From positions 1 through 6,727 of IMG/VR virus record IMGVR_UViG_3300026877_000059: a DNA stretch of 6,727 bases; one strand, given 5' to 3'. Positions 3,001-6,727 of the stretch are shown in pieces; positions within the stretch are counted from its first letter, which is position 1, and every line of letters begins with the position of its first letter. The translations under genes and the position numbers were made by a program. The notes under the pieces were generated by a model, which saw only the letters and a program-made list of their open reading frames with translations, had not been told where the DNA came from and made no database searches.

Positions 3001-4304
3001 GAAATGTTCTTTGCGTCTTGGATATCACCTTGGACTGACTGTAAATTTATTTGAAGATATTTAGAAGCCTTTTCCAAAACTTGATAGTTCTGCTGAAGAA
3101 TTTGATACACGCTGTCGAAATATTGAGAAAGAGAAAGAAATGTTTGCGTTGAAGGTGGTTGGGGTAATTGCTGTAAGCCCTCTAAAATCGTGAAACCTTG
3201 AATATATAAAGTTAAATTTATGTTAATATCGTTCTGTTGTGCTATTTGCGAAGCTTCTTGCAGATATTGGACAGCATCAGAATAATTTCCACTTTCTGCT
3301 TCTTGTTGCCCTTTTTTTATATCTTCAAGTATTTGCAGGTAGGCAGTGTATTTAGTATACATTTCCTGGACAGTGTCGGATAACGAACTTGCTAAACCTG
3401 ATAATGGTGTATTGTCAGCGTTAACGTTCTGTAGTTGATTCTGAGCCTGTTTTATAAGGTTTATTGCACTCTGTATTGCAGACATTGAATTATTGTTCTG
3501 TTCTGCAATATTCTGTGCATTAACTAATAGATTGACTATATTCAGAAGCTGAGAACTGACCTGTTCAGACTGTTGGTAATCGTTTGCAAGAGATGAAAAA
3601 TTGTTGTAATAACGTGATGCTTCTGTAGCGTACTGTGATGCAGTGGCGAAGAACGATTTTAATGATTGTAGATATTGTTGTAACTTCTGTAATGTTATTT
3701 CTCCCTGTGGTGGTTGCGGGAACGCAGGTATCTTCGCTAAGTAAGAAACAGCTGTTGTGACGTTTTCAAGCCCCTTGTTACTGATGTTATGTTGTTGTGC
3801 TAATTGCAGTGCCTGCTGGAGGTACTGATAAGCTTCTGCGAAGTTTGCTTTTTCCAATTCACTGTTAGCGTTATTGATGTACTGTTGTATCTGTTGTAGT
3901 GCCTGCACTGTCTGTATTTGTTGCTGTATTTGCGTTACATTAATTACGTTTGGATATTGTTGGGCTATTTGCAGAGCCTGGTTTAGGTCACTCAAAGCGG
4001 TGTTATAATCATCGTTCTTCAATGCCTCGTTTGCAGAATTGAAAAGTTGGATAACGTTAATGTAAGCGAAATAAGGCTGTAAGTTAATGTTCGGGTTTAG
4101 TTTTTGTGCGTTTTGTAAATCTGTTAATGCCTGGTTGATGTTGCCGTTCTCTGCGTCATTAATTGCCTGTTGTACATATATTAACGCTTGGATTTTTTGG
4201 GCAGTTTGAGTCAAACCGTTCTGTTGGGCTAACTGTAAGGCTTGTTGGTATTTACCCTCGGAAATTAACTGGTTTATCTGCTGTGAGATAGGATTAGCAC
4301 TCAT
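1..4304 (-). CDS. Giant (>=1434 aa, 3'-truncated) TPR-like/coiled-coil membrane-associated protein; probable bicaudavirus large virion protein (ATV ORF1940-like class)
   Basis: Manual translation from ATG at 4304 (MSANPISQQINQLISEGKYQQALQLAQQNG...) finds no stop down to position 1 (...KNLPNISQIIS). It is presumably absent from the ORF track because the stop lies outside the window. It has repeated TPR-like helices (YQQALQLAQQ, LNQALQIAQQ, LQQALQLAQQ, LQEASQIAQQ), a hydrophobic block at about aa 1016-1092 and a charged C-terminal region. The ORF itself is secure; the family label is inferred from context. Confidence 0.9.
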   Translation of the reverse strand, partial: MSANPISQQINQLISEGKYQQALQLAQQNGLTQTAQKIQALIYVQQAINDAENGNINQALTDLQNAQKLNPNINLQPYFAYINVIQLFNSANEALKNDDYNTALSDLNQALQIAQQYPNVINVTQIQQQIQTVQALQQIQQYINNANSELEKANFAEAYQYLQQALQLAQQHNISNKGLENVTTAVSYLAKIPAFPQPPQGEITLQKLQQYLQSLKSFFATASQYATEASRYYNNFSSLANDYQQSEQVSSQLLNIVNLLVNAQNIAEQNNNSMSAIQSAINLIKQAQNQLQNVNADNTPLSGLASSLSDTVQEMYTKYTAYLQILEDIKKGQQEAESGNYSDAVQYLQEASQIAQQNDININLTLYIQGFTILEGLQQLPQPPSTQTFLSLSQYFDSVYQILQQNYQVLEKASKYLQINLQSVQGDIQDAKNISQALQLLAEAQQLLTPSQNNTSPSTNTKTILANKDKILSDISQALQLLSESESYDMQSSAKQLFEIAQNYQTQVQTYLSGLEKTQQTLDALKTVNTLTTQKVNANSPSAYFLALMNNYTEALRVLKNAMSSAIQTNSLFEQINATPPFDMNQFEKENTALEQFSQLFGTTASAYSSIESSLNNQSNLSTPSDYVKYYQNVVSTIQKAMQKINSLNITDNDVDKVRHQIIQSLQENETNYSALFHAFNIIASATTETERHIQYGHSMGGNSAQALAQAYKEASQYLSQYQALQPIAQQFANMGEFYSLIAQANDLLQQAQNSSSVDAKISSMEQAKGYLQQALQYIPSSNSQAYQNIQNEISNINKAVSVLQNAQSLEQQIKNALSNGDWVSALYYYNELLKATQGTNINDVYNDVLNNNYFKAIQDVNNNPSLQSQQKQFLNSLIATIGINTYYLPLMNSSLQQAHLQASSWGQALSETFNFVQQMQPVATNLQNALQYAQDAENLAQYVSPQLQQNLSQVVSQIQQQYNAIEEQIQSAESNPFLNVFEGFANTFNTGLNNMMNDINNFIYSHLGKNIFTEILAGIVDGAIFIAISAIPIVGQVFDVMATISFVSSTIFDLLAGSASFNETVNSFKQMFTNPTSIAMIVTLIVNVIATRLIEPANIDNIDLLKTTDSVKSVLSKIENTIKDKVDISKISNNVTDTVKSDVTESPDFSKINDLVKEVKLDKLDIKALKGVGNKIVKIEGDAYEFVRSHISDTKITIETYDIFKDVKIKAFDGASKIAVKLSKDLADDIKVDVTPKLIDDVVASFENGKVKLTTVSEETIKNALSSNDLATALDTIKLNLSSTVAKQLFDDLKTADGNIVKISPDEGIAYVGGKFYDVFYKDGNIAKMEAIEDPVALAKLEKFAEDSVGNFVTLNKNVIEQLLKNNENLQSIEYELANKLTGNVVRNEYLKLKDVLGNETTFTSKTEINPNEIKTTNVIEGKNLPNISQIIS
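430..447. repeat. Dispersed palindrome copy 1: TCAAACAGCTGTTTGGCG (perfect 14-bp palindrome at 431-444)
   Basis: Read directly; identical over 18 bp to 2809-2826. Confidence 0.85.
1086..1099. repeat. Dispersed palindrome copy 2: TCAAACAGATGTTT on the minus strand
   Basis: Plus strand AAACATCTGTTTGA; one central mismatch to the main form. Confidence 0.7.
2809..2826. repeat. Dispersed palindrome copy 3: TCAAACAGCTGTTTGGCG (perfect 14-bp palindrome at 2810-2823)
   Basis: Read directly; identical over 18 bp to 430-447. Confidence 0.85.
2860..3005. repeat. Exact 23-bp direct repeat AACAACTGCAGAGCTTGCGAAAT (2860-2882 and 2983-3005)
   Basis: Both copies encode ISQALQLL in frame, 123 bp (41 codons) apart. 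Confidence 0.85.
3746..3757. repeat. Dispersed palindrome near copy: AAACAGCTGTTG (10-bp perfect core at 3747-3756)
   Basis: 11/12 match to AAACAGCTGTTT, in a different codon phase from the other intragenic copies. Confidence 0.6.
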
Positions 4305-4316
4305 TATATATATCTC

Positions 4317-4330
4317 TCAAACAGCTGTTT
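4317..4330. repeat. Dispersed palindrome copy 4 (intergenic): TCAAACAGCTGTTT
   Basis: Read directly; the 12-bp core lies 15-26 nt upstream of the giant gene's ATG. Confidence 0.85.
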
Positions 4331-4337
4331 AAAAAAA
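4331..4337 (-). terminator. Possible oligo-T terminator (T7) for the upstream three-gene unit
   Basis: T7 run 33-39 nt after the stop at 4370; archaeal intrinsic terminators are U-tracts. The same bases also form the putative TATA box. Confidence 0.35.
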
Positions 4338-4369
4338 TTATTAGATTTTTCTCTTCTCCTCCCGCTCTG

Positions 4370-4696
4370 CTATCTTTCCCTTAAAAACCAGTAGATAAAC
4401 GCCAGACCAATAATCATTATGAACACTACAATATCAAAAAACGGGTATGCAATAATGCTGTATAACATTAGCAATACATTGTATTGTTGGGAATAATACT
4501 GCGGTTGGTTTAGGGTAAATGTAGAATTAGCTATCTGTATCGATTCTTTTGTGCTATTTGTATATATTATAGAAGAGTTAGAGATGATGAGAGTTTGTTT
4601 GGTTACAAGGTTGAAGAACGGGAAAGCTACGAATACTAACATTGTAGCTAACGCAAAAAATATTACTGCCGTAGTTATGGACGGTTTCAATTGCAT
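4370..4696 (-). CDS. Small 108-aa membrane/hydrophobic hairpin protein (two hydrophobic helices, N/S/T/Q-rich loop); candidate minor virion protein
   Basis: GGTGA SD inside the end of the upstream gene (GAAGGTGATTAAGA-ATG). Hydrophobic N-terminal segment (ITTAVIFFALATMLVFVAFPFF) and C-terminal segment (IIAYPFFDIVVFIMIIGLAFIYWFL); loop sequons NSS, NST, NST. Confidence 0.85.
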   Translation of the reverse strand: MQLKPSITTAVIFFALATMLVFVAFPFFNLVTKQTLIISNSSIIYTNSTKESIQIANSTFTLNQPQYYSQQYNVLLMLYSIIAYPFFDIVVFIMIIGLAFIYWFLRER

Positions 4697-4698
4697 TC

Positions 4699-4953
4699 TT
4701 AATCACCTTCTTCCCTTATTGATAATGCTATAATAAAAATGAGAGCTACAACTATGCCTATTCCAAGTCCATACATCCAGTAGTTTATATACGGGACAAA
4801 ACTAGTGTAAGCAGTATGTATATCTGCGGAGACTACATGTGAAATATTGTTGGTAGGCTGAACAGTTTTAGACACGTTAGACTGTACAACGTTAAAAATA
4901 TTGAAAATATACACAAGAAGACCGAAAACTACAACGAATATTATCGTAAACAT
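4699..4953 (-). CDS. Small hydrophobic hairpin membrane protein (84 aa as called; probably 105 aa from ATG 5015 via a -1 shift or indel)
   Basis: Two hydrophobic helices flank a polar loop with an NIS sequon. The frame stays open upstream to 5016, and the ATG at 4953 has no SD motif. Confidence 0.8.
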   Translation of the reverse strand: MFTIIFVVVFGLLVYIFNIFNVVQSNVSKTVQPTNNISHVVSADIHTAYTSFVPYINYWMYGLGIGIVVALIFIIALSIREEGD

Positions 4954-5016
4954 AGCAATAACTATGAAAGAAATAGATGAACGTAACGCTGTTGCTAGAT
5001 CAGAAAAAAACCCATT

Positions 5017-5382
5017 TTAGTCACCCATGTTCAGAATTTGAGATTCTTCATAGCCGTTAGCCCACTCTTCTAATGTTTGTAATATTCCGCGTTTTTTAGC
5101 TTCCTTAAGTATTTCTTTCCTAACATATTCTGGTACAGGTGTGCCGTCTGGTACACCGTTCTCTTTTATTACATGTCTTATTAGAAGGACTAACCCGTGT
5201 AACGCTTTCTTCAGGGGTGGGAAGGCGTCAGACCAAGCCTCGTCCCCTGCGAGTTTTAGTGATATTTCTGGATAGTCTATTTCACCTTTTATAAATAATA
5301 GAAAGTCATGTAGTGCGTCTCTTGCATACTTCTCTGGATGTAAGTCGTCGAACTCAGATCTAACCCAATTTGACCAATTCAT
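5017..5382 (-). CDS. Bicaudavirus ATV p131-like four-helix-bundle structural protein (historically 'major coat protein' family), about 121 aa
   Basis: KYARDALHDFLLFIKGEIDYPEISLKLAGDEA...KKALHGLVLLI matches, from memory, the ATV p131 segment DYAGGAVKILDMFENGQLGYPEVTLKLAGEEA...KEAIHAIVKMI. I prefer ATG 5382 over the track's TTG 5394 because GGGTGG (SD-like) lies at 5392-5387. Confidence 0.8.
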   Translation of the reverse strand: MNWSNWVRSEFDDLHPEKYARDALHDFLLFIKGEIDYPEISLKLAGDEAWSDAFPPLKKALHGLVLLIRHVIKENGVPDGTPVPEYVRKEILKEAKKRGILQTLEEWANGYEESQILNMGD

Positions 5383-5393
5383 TTTTCCACCCA

Positions 5394-5407
5394 AAACATA
5401 TGTTTGA
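5394..5407. repeat. Dispersed palindrome copy 5 (intergenic): TCAAACATATGTTT on the minus strand
   Basis: Perfect 12-bp palindrome AAACATATGTTT; both central bases differ (GC to TA) while symmetry is retained. Confidence 0.75.
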
Positions 5408-5422
5408 GTAATGGTTAAAAAA
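5394..5422 (-). promoter_or_regulatory. Putative TATA box (TTTTTTAA, 5422-5415) followed by the palindrome AAACATATGTTT (5394-5405), upstream of the p131-like gene
   Basis: Minus strand reads TAA-TATTTTTTAACCATTACTCAAACATATGTTTTGGGTGGAAAA-ATG. The T6 run could also terminate the upstream gene. Confidence 0.55.
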
Positions 5423-5424
5423 TA

Positions 5425-6727
5425 TTATGAGATCTTGAAGCCCTGCTTTACCATCTCAAGGATCTTCTTAGCTTTTTCCTCTTCACTCTGCGTTAATTTA
5501 CTAATACCGTAGTTCATCAGTTCTTCTTTCTTTAATTCAGACAGATAGTTGTAATAGTTAACAAGTGCGAACAGTGTACCGAATAAATTAATTAATTGTA
5601 TTCTGTACTTTGGATTCCTTCCAGTTTCCTTTGCAACATTATCTATGAACGTGTCCTTAAGTGTCTCAGGGAATGCTGATAACTCTTGCCTCGCCTTGTA
5701 CAAACAGATTTCATCCTCTTCCGAGCATATTCCTAGTAATTTTGTTATAGTTTTGAACACCTGCATGTCGAGGGTTGAGGGGCTTACAGTAGTTTTAACA
5801 ATTAACGCACCATATTGATCGTCAAAAGCTTTCTTTGCAAAATTCAAGAGCGATTTTAATTCCTTCAATTGCCCTTCATTAGTTTTATTGAGGTCGAGGT
5901 CATTTATCCTTAGTACAGAATACTTGCCGTTTGGCAACAAATCATTAGGCGACCCGACCAACAACGTATTATTAGCATCTACGATTAAGGGTAACGAGAA
6001 ACCTGCAGACTGTAGATTTGTAAAAGCGTCCACAAGGTCTTGAAGGTATTTAAGCTTCTCAGGGTTGGCTTCCTTAAGGTTCATTGTATCGTTTACCTCT
6101 TGGTAACTCTTATTCTTAAATAAATTTACGAACGAGAAGATCAAATACGCATACTTGTATAATTGTACTATGTTACTCAATTGATTTTGATACCTTTCGA
6201 ACTCGTCTGGACTCAGCGGTCTGAGGACTCTTAAGTCTAACACTTGGTCTGGAGCGAAAGAGTCTAACAGTGGTATAAGATAATTTTGTCTAAGTTCTGC
6301 GAATATATTAGATAGAACACTTCTAGTAGTTTCTTCTATTACATTTCCAGACTGGTATGTAACTTTCTTGCTTGAAGATTTGTATTCAGATGGGAATTTA
6401 GTAACTAACGCCAAGACGGTGGTAGGGAGAATGCTGGCGTTGTTAGTATCTAACAATTCTAGGATCCTATTCCAATTCTTTTGTAACTCGTTCCAGACCT
6501 TTTCAGCAAACTCTTCACGCTCTTTTCTGCTTAAAGACTCCCCTTGTTTTACGCCGTATCTGTTTAAGTATGGTCTTAGCCAATCTGGAATGTATAGTGA
6601 AAGTTCCATATTGAGTACTTTTTCTAATTCTACTTTATTTTGCTCAATATTACTATTTTCTACCGCGTTCTGTTCTACGTTCTGTTGTTCAGGAGCAGGG
6701 ATTTGTTGTTGAGGAGTACCTAAAACT
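5425..6727 (-). CDS. Uncharacterised alpha-helical viral protein, 5'-truncated (>=433 aa)
   Basis: The track's 394-aa ORF (ATG 6609) stays open in frame to the window edge (VLGTPQQQIPAPEQQNVEQNAVENSNIEQNKVELEKVLN-M...), and ATG 6609 has no SD. No catalytic motif recognised. Confidence 0.85.
   Translation of the reverse strand, partial: VLGTPQQQIPAPEQQNVEQNAVENSNIEQNKVELEKVLNMELSLYIPDWLRPYLNRYGVKQGESLSRKEREEFAEKVWNELQKNWNRILELLDTNNASILPTTVLALVTKFPSEYKSSSKKVTYQSGNVIEETTRSVLSNIFAELRQNYLIPLLDSFAPDQVLDLRVLRPLSPDEFERYQNQLSNIVQLYKYAYLIFSFVNLFKNKSYQEVNDTMNLKEANPEKLKYLQDLVDAFTNLQSAGFSLPLIVDANNTLLVGSPNDLLPNGKYSVLRINDLDLNKTNEGQLKELKSLLNFAKKAFDDQYGALIVKTTVSPSTLDMQVFKTITKLLGICSEEDEICLYKARQELSAFPETLKDTFIDNVAKETGRNPKYRIQLINLFGTLFALVNYYNYLSELKKEELMNYGISKLTQSEEEKAKKILEMVKQGFKIS

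Follow-up and report, generated by a model that had tools for sequence, protein, structure and literature searches.

Does a small membrane-protein gene of a Sulfolobus virus, whose only conventional start signal lies in the wrong reading frame, depend on a −1 slip of the reading frame for its expression, or is the apparent frame conflict an artefact? The question was raised by an earlier note on a stretch of 6,727 nucleotides (the window, IMG/VR record IMGVR_UViG_3300026877_000059), which is a fragment of an SMV1-like bicaudavirus. To answer it, we inspected the minus strand of the window and compared 38 distinct related junctions from 5 isolate genomes, IMG/VR and JGI, ENA and Logan metagenomes. 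The observation made in the note proved to be correct in every detail of the sequence. Its central interpretation, that the SD+ATG at 5015 reaches the membrane-protein ORF only through a −1 shift on GGGTTTTTTT, is supported by the comparative evidence given below.

Architecture of the junction

The features of the locus are collected in Table 1. On the minus strand the Shine-Dalgarno motif is separated from the ATG by the spacer CTAAA (5020-5016), and the codons GGT TTT TTT CTG ATC are then followed by TAG. The gp06 homologue ends GGT GAC TAA, whereas the hairpin gene itself ends GGT GAT TAA (4707-4699), so that each upstream gene supplies the GGTGA of the following one. A −1 shift on the run joins ATG 5015 to the ORF ending at 4699 and gives 105 aa. 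In the ORF frame only AAT lies between the TAA of gp06 and GGG and, consequently, the window has no in-frame start upstream of ATG 4953.

Table 1. Features of the junction in the window, with supporting observations
Coordinates	Strand	Feature	Observations
5017..5382	-	Upstream gene, homologue of SMV1 gp06; ATV P131/RIP-family protein, reported as an abundant virion protein	Pfam PF22238, E 2.7e-11; phrog_10676; labelled 'major head protein' in RefSeq, but the true SMV1 MCP is gp03 (PMC12199143)
5021..5025	-	Shine-Dalgarno motif GGTGA, 5 nt upstream of ATG 5015	GGTG(A/G) in all 38 junctions; only 9 of 49 SMV1 CDS have GGTG within 20 nt upstream, with spacing of 3-7 nt in 8 and 11 nt in one
5013..5015	-	Start codon ATG of the 0 frame	ATG in 36, GTG in 1 and TTG in 1 of 38 junctions (35, 1 and 1 of the 37 T7 junctions); always 2 nt before the T7
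5004..5013	-	Putative shift site G GGT TTT TTT (T7 = 5004-5010)	Contains G_GGU_UUU and U_UUU_UUU in the ATG frame; T7 starts 6 nt after the gp06 stop codon; invariant in 37 of 38 junctions
4995..4997	-	Frame-0 stop TAG, ending the 6-codon unshifted product MGFFLI	Of the 37 T7 junctions, frame-0 stop at codon 7 in 31, codon 8 in 1 and codon 18 in 5
4699..5013	-	−1-frame ORF (GFFSDLATALRSS... to the TAA stop); with Met from 5015, the predicted 105-aa helical-hairpin membrane protein, homologue of SMV1 gp07	phrog_22665 covers only residues 21-104, the usually annotated 84-aa form; pN/pS of the extension 0.24-0.25, as in the rest of the ORF
4951..4953	-	Internal in-frame ATG (Met21 of the −1-frame ORF, Met22 of the 105-aa product), the start usually annotated for the 84-aa form	No SD upstream; invariant in the alignment
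4370..4696	-	Downstream 108-aa membrane-protein gene, gp08 homologue	GGTGA 4707-4703, 6-nt spacer and ATG; phrog_21133, E 3.7e-65

The similar size of the hairpin protein and of its 108-aa neighbour does not reflect detectable paralogy, since no sequence similarity was found between the two. Homologues of the hairpin protein were not found beyond the SMV group by tblastn, and a Pfam search gave nothing significant. In the AlphaFold model (mean pLDDT 73) two helices are predicted, 2-50 and 56-103; helix 2-50 is continuous, in agreement with the longer first hydrophobic helix suggested by the note. That the product is a minor virion protein remains only a suggestion of the note.

Conservation of the junction

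Of the 38 junctions, 37 keep NTG-GG-T7-CTGA with the ORF in the −1 frame. The spacer between SD and start is 4, 5, 6, 7 or 8 nt long and, therefore, the frame relation to gp06 and to the GTG inside GGTGA changes, while the relation of ATG to T7 to ORF never does. The SD motif is maintained whatever the reading frame, or even the presence, of gp06, being provided by Gly-Asp-stop, by Gly-stop or, in junction L052, by the SD of gp06 itself. All three canonical start codons occur at the 0-frame start position, whereas the overlapping ORF-frame codon varies (AAT, GAT, TAT, CGT, ATT, encoding N, D, Y, R or I).

The arrangement is more than chance would give. SMV1 has only 3 sense-strand runs of T7 or longer in 43 kb of coding DNA, against 9 runs of A7 or longer. 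In addition, all four synonymous third positions inside GGG TTT TTT TCT are invariant, while 15 of the 17 third positions just downstream vary; from these counts we calculated a hypergeometric P of about 0.0025.

In the single exception, two independent contigs, L020 (ENA) and L046 (JGI), which differ at 2 nt downstream, carry ATG GGT TTT TTC TCT (T6-C-T) and encode exactly MGFFSDL... in frame. This lineage hard-codes the shift and represents a natural in-frame allele encoding the product predicted for the shifted frame.

These data bear directly on the possibilities, both listed in the note, that the true sequence is T8 and T7 a homopolymer sequencing or assembly error, or that genomes alternate between T7 (off) and T8 (on) by phase variation. 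Homopolymers are prone to both, and SMV3 has an N inside the run. However, T7 was found in 37 distinct sequences from independent isolates, assemblers and sequencing centres, with no T8, T6 or T9 allele; a DNA run with a contig depth of ~5400 showed T7 only; the only in-frame allele is not a length variant of the run; and the synonymous sites of the run are under selection. Both explanations are thus rejected, and we regard them as very unlikely.

An exact-pattern scan of IMG/VR for the same cassette in other viral genes gave only SMV-family hits with an SD, the other 26 hits being chance matches in unrelated contigs.

Coding status of the N-terminal extension

We then asked whether the protein could simply start in frame, without recoding, either at the internal ATG 4953 (84 aa) or at a GTG or TTG overlapping the SD, as in the GenBank annotation of SMV1 gp07, in which case the SD, the ATG and the 6-codon mini-ORF would only deliver ribosomes for reinitiation. 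Some observations favour this view: the internal ATG is invariant, most database entries annotate the 84-aa form, 10 of 38 junctions, including SMV1, SMV1a and SMV4, have an in-frame GTG or TTG overlapping the SD, and a frame-0 stop lies 42 nt upstream of ATG 4953, a distance at which reinitiation is conceivable.

By contrast, the 17 codons between the slip site and ATG 4953 evolve as coding sequence in the −1 frame only. Allele changes by codon position are 10:3:28 (chi-square P = 5e-6), and pN/pS is 0.25 in the ORF frame against 1.09 and 6.17 in the other two frames, to be compared with 0.24 for the undisputed part of the gene. The extension also holds the most conserved residues of the protein, the N-terminal G F F S D L. 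T.. R. S.. F being invariant; on these grounds it is inferred to be translated. Nevertheless, 28 of 38 junctions, including that of the window, have no in-frame ATG, GTG or TTG for it, and in several only one codon separates the in-frame stop from GGG. Where a GTG exists, it lies inside the SD with no SD of its own, and the T6-C-T lineage encodes MGFFSDL directly from the ATG. That the gene starts at 4953 is therefore rejected, and expression without recoding is unlikely, although the invariance of the internal Met means that a second, shorter product of 84 aa cannot be excluded.

Stop-codon readthrough from gp06 was also considered and rejected, because gp06 is in the ORF frame only for some spacer lengths, and it is truncated or absent in junctions L011-13, L020/46 and L052, where the cassette persists.

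The two outcomes set beforehand as contradicting the −1 shift, a T8 run and a lack of conservation of the 21 codons upstream of 4953, were looked for in the sequences compared. Neither was found, since orthologues conserve both the shift and these codons, and T7, not T8, appears in the isolate genomes, in the metagenome contigs and in the contigs of the DNA and RNA runs.

Ribosomal or transcriptional slippage

Of the explanations offered in the note, ribosomal frameshifting and transcriptional slippage both remain, and they cannot be separated by the present data, as the product and all the comparative evidence are identical under the two models.

We favour an obligatory programmed −1 ribosomal shift at codons 2-4. 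In this view, ribosomes would be placed by the GGTGA on AUG 5015 and read GGU UUU UUU; a fraction would slip back one base on the run (U_UUU_UUU and/or G_GGU_UUU, where tRNA-Phe re-pairs perfectly) and continue as UCU GAU ..., producing the 105-aa protein MGFFSDLATALRSS..., whereas ribosomes that do not slip would stop after six codons at UAG. Slippery heptamers of the X_XXY_YYZ type are in register with the 0 frame, and this register is invariant in 37 of 38 junctions. Moreover, −1 PRF by Sulfolobus ribosomes is experimentally established for fucA1.

The search for stimulatory elements gave mixed results. No conserved or stable downstream structure was found, the RNAalifold energy being about 0 and the single-sequence fold having z = −1.1, and there was no Rfam match; this feature is not universal, since an upstream SD or other stimulators can substitute. 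GGTG(A/G) ends 9-13 nt before U_UUU_UUU in all junctions (a spacer of 4-8 nt plus 5), the distance at which an SD stimulates −1 shifting in E. coli dnaX and, in the absence of conserved downstream structure, the SD is the likely stimulator here, even though such stimulation is, as far as is known, established only in bacteria. A 'hungry' codon pause is not supported, since the frame-0 codon after the run, CUG, is not rare in SMV1 (10% of Leu codons). The frame-0 stop was also considered as a stimulator but, being at codon 7 or 8 in 32 of 37 T7 junctions and at codon 18 in 5, it is not essential. In addition, programmed shifts this close to the start codon appear to be hardly documented.

Alternatively, the archaeal RNA polymerase could pause on the T7 (A7 template) and add one extra U in a fraction of transcripts, so that U8 mRNAs would read ATG GGT TTT TTT TCT in frame and give the same protein. 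A pure homopolymer conserved to the base, including its synonymous sites, suits this mechanism equally well; the rU:dA hybrid is weak, the host grows at high temperature, archaeal RNAP pauses and terminates on oligo-T, and no RNA stimulator for ribosomal shifting was found. Slippage-based expression is known in bacteria and has been proposed for IS elements in genomes that include S. solfataricus. On the other hand, the run has exactly 7 bases in 37 of 38 junctions, while documented programmed cases use 8-9 or more (A9 in Thermus dnaX, 8-9 A in IS elements), and 7 nt do not fill the 8-9 bp hybrid, although at 75-80 °C a shorter run might suffice. SMV1 also tolerates 9 in-frame sense-strand A7-A8 runs in ordinary genes. 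Contigs from two RNA-seq runs of SMV1a-infected cells, and from one further run that may be RNA or DNA, carry only T7, and in one of these runs variants at about 0.5% elsewhere were kept as separate contigs; this is suggestive only, because Logan contigs drop rare variants and a minor U8 mRNA is not excluded. Polymerase slippage thus remains a possible, but less favoured, explanation.

The T7 may have a further role. T6-T7 runs lie 2-28 nt after the stops of gp03, 04, 05, 06, 11, 13, 15, 23 and 33 in SMV1, which include the abundant virion genes gp03, gp05, gp06, gp11 and gp23 (abundance from PMC12199143), and runs of T5 or longer terminate archaeal RNAP in vitro (PMC2253867). The T7 has the sequence and position expected of an oligo-T terminator and probably also acts as a terminator or attenuator of the abundantly expressed gp06 gene; transcription and translation of the membrane protein would then both be throttled relative to gp06.

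The analysis itself establishes the conserved architecture, the coding status of the extension in the −1 frame, the lack of any in-frame start in most lineages and the existence of a natural in-frame allele encoding the predicted product. Instead, that the slip is made by the ribosome rather than by RNA polymerase, the role of the SD, the terminator role of the T7 and a low efficiency of the event are inferred, as is the synthesis of the trans-frame protein from an mRNA identical to the DNA, for which there is no protein or ribosome-profiling evidence. We are fairly confident that some −1 (or +1 nt) recoding event makes the 105-aa protein, whereas our confidence that it is ribosomal is no better than even.

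A more speculative reading, which we consider doubtful but not excluded, is that one 20-nt cassette (GGTGA, spacer, AUG, GG, U7) integrates three processes: the U7 would terminate or attenuate transcription of the abundant gp06 mRNA, the SD would place ribosomes on AUG, and the still-engaged SD:anti-SD duplex, 9-13 nt upstream, would pull the ribosome back one base on U_UUU_UUU during the first translocations. This would be an initiation-coupled −1 frameshift setting a fixed low gp07:gp06 ratio, a mode of recoding that has not been described in any domain.

Comparison with known systems

One of the closest known systems is the −1 PRF of Saccharolobus solfataricus fucA1 (α-L-fucosidase), which shares the host group and the ribosome. 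There too the shift is obligatory for a single functional product, the heptamer is homopolymer-rich (A_AAA_AAU, compared with U_UUU_UUU here), the unshifted product is short, and in-frame relatives in other lineages encode the residues predicted for the shifted product, as L020/L046 do here. However, fucA1 is experimentally proven, shifts mid-gene between two long ORFs and has rare codons and a putative stem-loop downstream, whereas the site described here is viral, lies at codons 2-4, has a frame-0 product of only 6 residues, lacks a conserved downstream structure and is predicted from sequence.

In E. coli dnaX (A_AAA_AAG) an SD lies about 10 nt upstream of a homopolymeric heptamer, but it is internal and separate from initiation, a strong downstream hairpin is also needed, and the shift yields a second, shorter product; here the SD is the initiation SD itself and the shift is needed for the only long product. 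In programmed transcriptional slippage (Thermus thermophilus dnaX A9, Shigella mxiE, A8-A9 in IS elements) an A/T homopolymer likewise lies at the junction of two frames, one extra base in the mRNA restores the frame and, as in mxiE, the longer product requires the event; here the run is shorter, no heterogeneous RNA was seen in the contigs, and the run sits at the very start of the gene, overlapping a terminator-like position.

The −1 frameshifts in the tail-assembly-chaperone genes of haloarchaeal tailed viruses (HVTV-1, HCTV-1, -2 and -5) are also predicted recoding events in archaeal virus structural-gene modules, but they are conserved G/GT-type shifts giving two products with a long shared N-terminus, in viruses of euryarchaea, while this site is in a spindle-shaped crenarchaeal virus and would make a single small membrane protein. 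Finally, archaeal intrinsic oligo-T terminators share the sense-strand run of T5 or longer shortly after a stop codon, but here the run lies inside the first codons of the next gene and is also the frame junction.

Implications

According to a 2021 review, experimentally supported −1 frameshifting in Archaea is limited to fucA1, plus the predictions in haloarchaeal tailed viruses, and none has been described for crenarchaeal viruses, in which this would be the first recoding site. The site is short, is kept in 37 of 38 distinct junctions of SMV-like viruses, and lies in a genetically tractable virus-host pair, SMV1a (PQ221053, run at position 4817-4823) and S. islandicus REY15A, for which RNA-seq data (PRJNA1170361) and matching DNA libraries (PRJNA1169678) exist. 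Together with the natural in-frame allele as a control, this makes archaeal recoding, and the choice between ribosomal and polymerase slippage at high temperature, directly testable. The finding also corrects the annotation of the family: database entries give the protein as 84/85 aa from the internal ATG, or as 108 aa from a GTG inside the SD, and the most conserved part of the protein is missing from most of them, whereas on this evidence the conserved product is 105 aa and starts MGFFSDL.

Gene Content of the Window

The 6.7-kb window is a fragment of an SMV1-like spindle-shaped virus of Sulfolobus/Saccharolobus (Bicaudaviridae) and, over positions 4300-5500, it is 91% identical to SMV1 and SMV1a, 90% to SMV4, 83% to SMV3 and 74% to SMV2. 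All the genes lie on the minus strand and match SMV1 gp05 to gp09. The gp06 product belongs to the ATV P131/RIP family (PF22238) and is reported as an abundant virion protein; however, the true major capsid protein (MCP) of SMV1 is gp03 and, therefore, the RefSeq label 'major head protein' for gp06 is loose.

Coordinates of the genes, signals and side features (L020 and L046, independent ENA and JGI contigs, respectively; L055, SMV1; other L handles, related sequences of the comparison)
Sequence	Strand	Coordinates	Feature	Remarks
Window	-	6726-5425	gp05	partial
Window	-	5422-5417	T6 run	2 nt after the gp05 stop, just upstream of the gp06 promoter region
Window	-	5408-5393	motif CTCAAACATATGTTTT	precedes the gp06 SD
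Window	-	5382-5017	gp06	stop codon TAA
Window	-	5025-5021	GGTGA (SD)	followed by CTAAA
Window	-	5015-5013	ATG	frame-0 start
Window	-	5015/4953-4699	gp07
Window	-	5013-4699	long ORF, GGG to TAA	-1 frame
Window	-	5010-5004	T7	within GGT TTT TTT
Window	-	4997-4995	TAG	frame-0 stop
Window	-	4953	internal ATG	in frame with the long ORF
Window	-	4880-4840	loop of the predicted hairpin protein	conserved N-x-S sequons
Window	-	4696-4370	gp08	GGTGA, 6 nt, ATG at 4696
Window	-	4304-3	gp09	giant virion protein, partial
L011 (example of L011-L013)		1346-1498	gp06	truncated to 50 aa, new C-terminus
L020 (also in L046)		275-358	gp06	27-codon remnant
L052		150-210	gp06	deleted
L055		33216-33222	T7 run in gp27	64 nt after an annotated start that overlaps gp26
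L055		37057-37063	T7 run in gp33
L018		2194	gp08-gp09 intergenic region	SMV1 about 5774

Organisation of the gp06-gp07 Junction

The earlier note had claimed that a Shine-Dalgarno motif and an ATG at 5015 reach the gene of the hairpin protein only through a -1 shift, and the sequence is exactly as it was described there. After the ATG, GGT TTT TTT is followed by CTG ATC and the stop codon, so that frame 0 encodes MGFFLI, while the long ORF is in the -1 frame. In the window, only AAT separates the TAA of gp06 from GGG in the frame of the ORF and, hence, there is no in-frame start before ATG 4953. The next gene, gp08, shows the same layout without a frame break.

Comparison of the Junction among Related Viruses

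To evaluate the conservation of this arrangement, the junction was collected from 5 isolate genomes, 13 IMG/VR loci, 6 contigs encoding database homologues and 29 metagenome loci; after removal of duplicates, 38 distinct junctions were obtained, SMV3 being left out of the count because of an N in the run. NTG-GG-T7-CTGA with the ORF in the -1 frame was found in 37 of the 38. In these 37, the 0-frame start codon is ATG in 35, GTG in one (SMV2) and TTG in one (the related sequence L053), whereas the overlapping codon in the ORF frame is AAT, GAT, TAT, CGT or ATT; therefore, what is conserved is the start codon and not an amino acid. GGTG(A/G) is always present, whether it is read as Gly-Asp-stop or Gly-stop of gp06, belongs to a truncated gp06 (L011-L013), or is the SD of gp06 itself after deletion of the gene (L052). 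The spacer between SD and start is 4 nt in 14 junctions, 5 in 2, 6 in 14, 7 in 8, and 8 in SMV3. These indels change the frame of everything upstream relative to the ORF, but never the relation of ATG to T7 to ORF. As a result, 28 of 38 junctions have no in-frame ATG, GTG or TTG and, in the window, SMV2, L016 and L043-L051, a stop lies two codons before GGG. The 10 junctions with an in-frame candidate use a GTG inside GGTGA or a TTG abutting it.

The annotation of gp07 in the databases is inconsistent. In GenBank, SMV1 gp07 (YP_009008074) is 108 aa long and starts from the GTG inside the SD, while the other homologues (SMV1a, SMV2, SMV3, SMV4 and the database proteins P0010, P0017, P0018, P0020 and P0023) are 84-85 aa long and start from the internal ATG. 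Moreover, several JGI entries name the 84-92-aa protein 'glucan phosphoethanolaminetransferase', which looks spurious for a two-helix protein.

The comparison also revealed that gp06 is dispensable or variable in natural SMV-like genomes, being truncated in L011-L013, reduced to a remnant in L020 and L046, and deleted in L052, in which the promoter and SD of gp06 are fused directly to ATG-GG-T7. The SD-ATG-T7 cassette survives all three rearrangements. A further difference was observed between gp08 and gp09, where all four sequencing runs, of SMV1a-type material, lack 9 nt that are present in the SMV1 reference.

Coding Status of the Extension

For the 17 codons between the run and ATG 4953, allele changes were counted by codon position, and they are distributed 10:3:28 in the frame of the ORF (chi-square P = 5e-6). 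In this frame the pN/pS of the extension is 0.24-0.25, against 1.09 and 6.17 in the other two frames, and 0.24 in the remaining 83 codons of the gene. The residues G F F S D L. T.. R. S.. F are invariant, making the extension the most conserved part of the protein. On these grounds, we concluded that the extension is translated, which excludes that initiation occurs only at ATG 4953, since this would leave the selected extension untranslated. Inside the site, the four synonymous positions of GGG TTT TTT TCT never vary, whereas 15 of the next 17 third positions do; the run is therefore selected beyond its coding role.

A Natural In-Frame Allele

The two independent contigs L020 and L046, which differ at 2 nt downstream, carry ATG GGT TTT TTC TCT GAC, that is, T6-C-T instead of T7-C-T, and encode MGFFSDL... 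directly from the ATG. Their closest T7 relative (L021) differs at the site by that single base. This is the product predicted for the -1 shift, started from the predicted ATG.

Two of the explanations offered in the earlier note, namely a homopolymer sequencing error and phase variation, could be excluded, because T7 occurs in 37 of the 38 distinct junctions, no T8, T6 or T9 allele exists among them, and the DNA and RNA run contigs of SMV1/SMV1a show T7 only. Similarly, readthrough of the gp06 stop was ruled out, as its frame relation to the ORF is not conserved and gp06 can be absent. Thus, the interpretation given in the note, that the long ORF is reached from the ATG by a -1 shift, is supported, with ribosomal frameshifting and transcriptional slippage, both proposed there, as the surviving mechanisms.

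Possible Mechanism of the Shift

A ribosomal -1 shift and the insertion of one U by RNA polymerase would give the same protein. In favour of the ribosome, the heptamers G_GGU_UUU and U_UUU_UUU are in register, and the SD lies 9-13 nt upstream of U_UUU_UUU, which is the dnaX-type distance. Moreover, Sulfolobus ribosomes are proven to shift -1 on A_AAA_AAU, at about 10% in vitro, and the run of 7 is shorter than those of known slippage sites, which have 8-9 or more. The RNA-seq contigs contain only T7, although variants at about 0.5% elsewhere were retained in one run, but this evidence is weak since contigs drop rare variants. Against the ribosome, no conserved downstream structure and no Rfam family were found, and CUG is not a rare codon. 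We consider ribosomal frameshifting about as likely as not, and transcriptional slippage possible but less likely; the two could also act together. The conserved arrangement, the coding status of the extension and the in-frame allele are results of the sequence comparison, while the mechanism of the shift, a terminator role of the run and the topology of the protein are inferred.

A 2021 review lists fucA1 as the only demonstrated archaeal -1 frameshift, together with predicted shifts in haloarchaeal tailed viruses, and our literature searches found no report of recoding in SMV or in any crenarchaeal virus. The unusual features of the present site are its position at codons 2-4, the initiation SD as the only visible stimulator, and the overlap with a terminator-like tract.

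The Predicted gp07 Protein

For the 105-aa protein, AlphaFold2 with 19 sequences predicted a helical hairpin, with helices 2-50 and 56-103 and a mean pLDDT of 73, in which the extension continues into the first hydrophobic helix. As inferred from the sequence, Arg11 at the N-terminus and the REEGD tail suggest that both ends are cytoplasmic, while the connecting region of roughly 40 residues, which carries N-x-S sequons (NVS and NIS, the latter within NNIS), would face outward and is possibly N-glycosylated. No Pfam family was found, phrog_22665 covers only residues 21-104, corresponding to the truncated annotated form, and no homologues were found outside SMV-like viruses.

A Possible Second Role for the Run

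In SMV1, T6-T7 runs lie 2-28 nt after the stops of gp03 (the MCP), gp04, gp05, gp06, gp11, gp13, gp15, gp23 and gp33, and the T6 run after gp05 in the window, another candidate oligo-T terminator, is in line with this pattern. Instead, inside SMV1 coding regions sense-strand runs of T7 or longer are rare, 3 against 9 runs of A7 or longer, and the only two T7 runs other than that of gp07 are those in gp27 and gp33. The motif CTCAAACATATGTTTT, which in SMV1 recurs after gp03 (there followed by a T7 and CTG), after gp05 and after gp14, may be a shared promoter or regulatory element of virion genes.

Archaeal RNA polymerase terminates in vitro on runs of T5 or longer. The T7, 6 nt after the gp06 stop, therefore fits the position of a terminator or attenuator of gp06, as inferred from sequence alone. 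However, a terminator alone does not explain the frame break, since T8 or T6-C would be in frame. Therefore, the shift itself appears to be selected, most simply to keep the membrane protein scarce relative to gp06.
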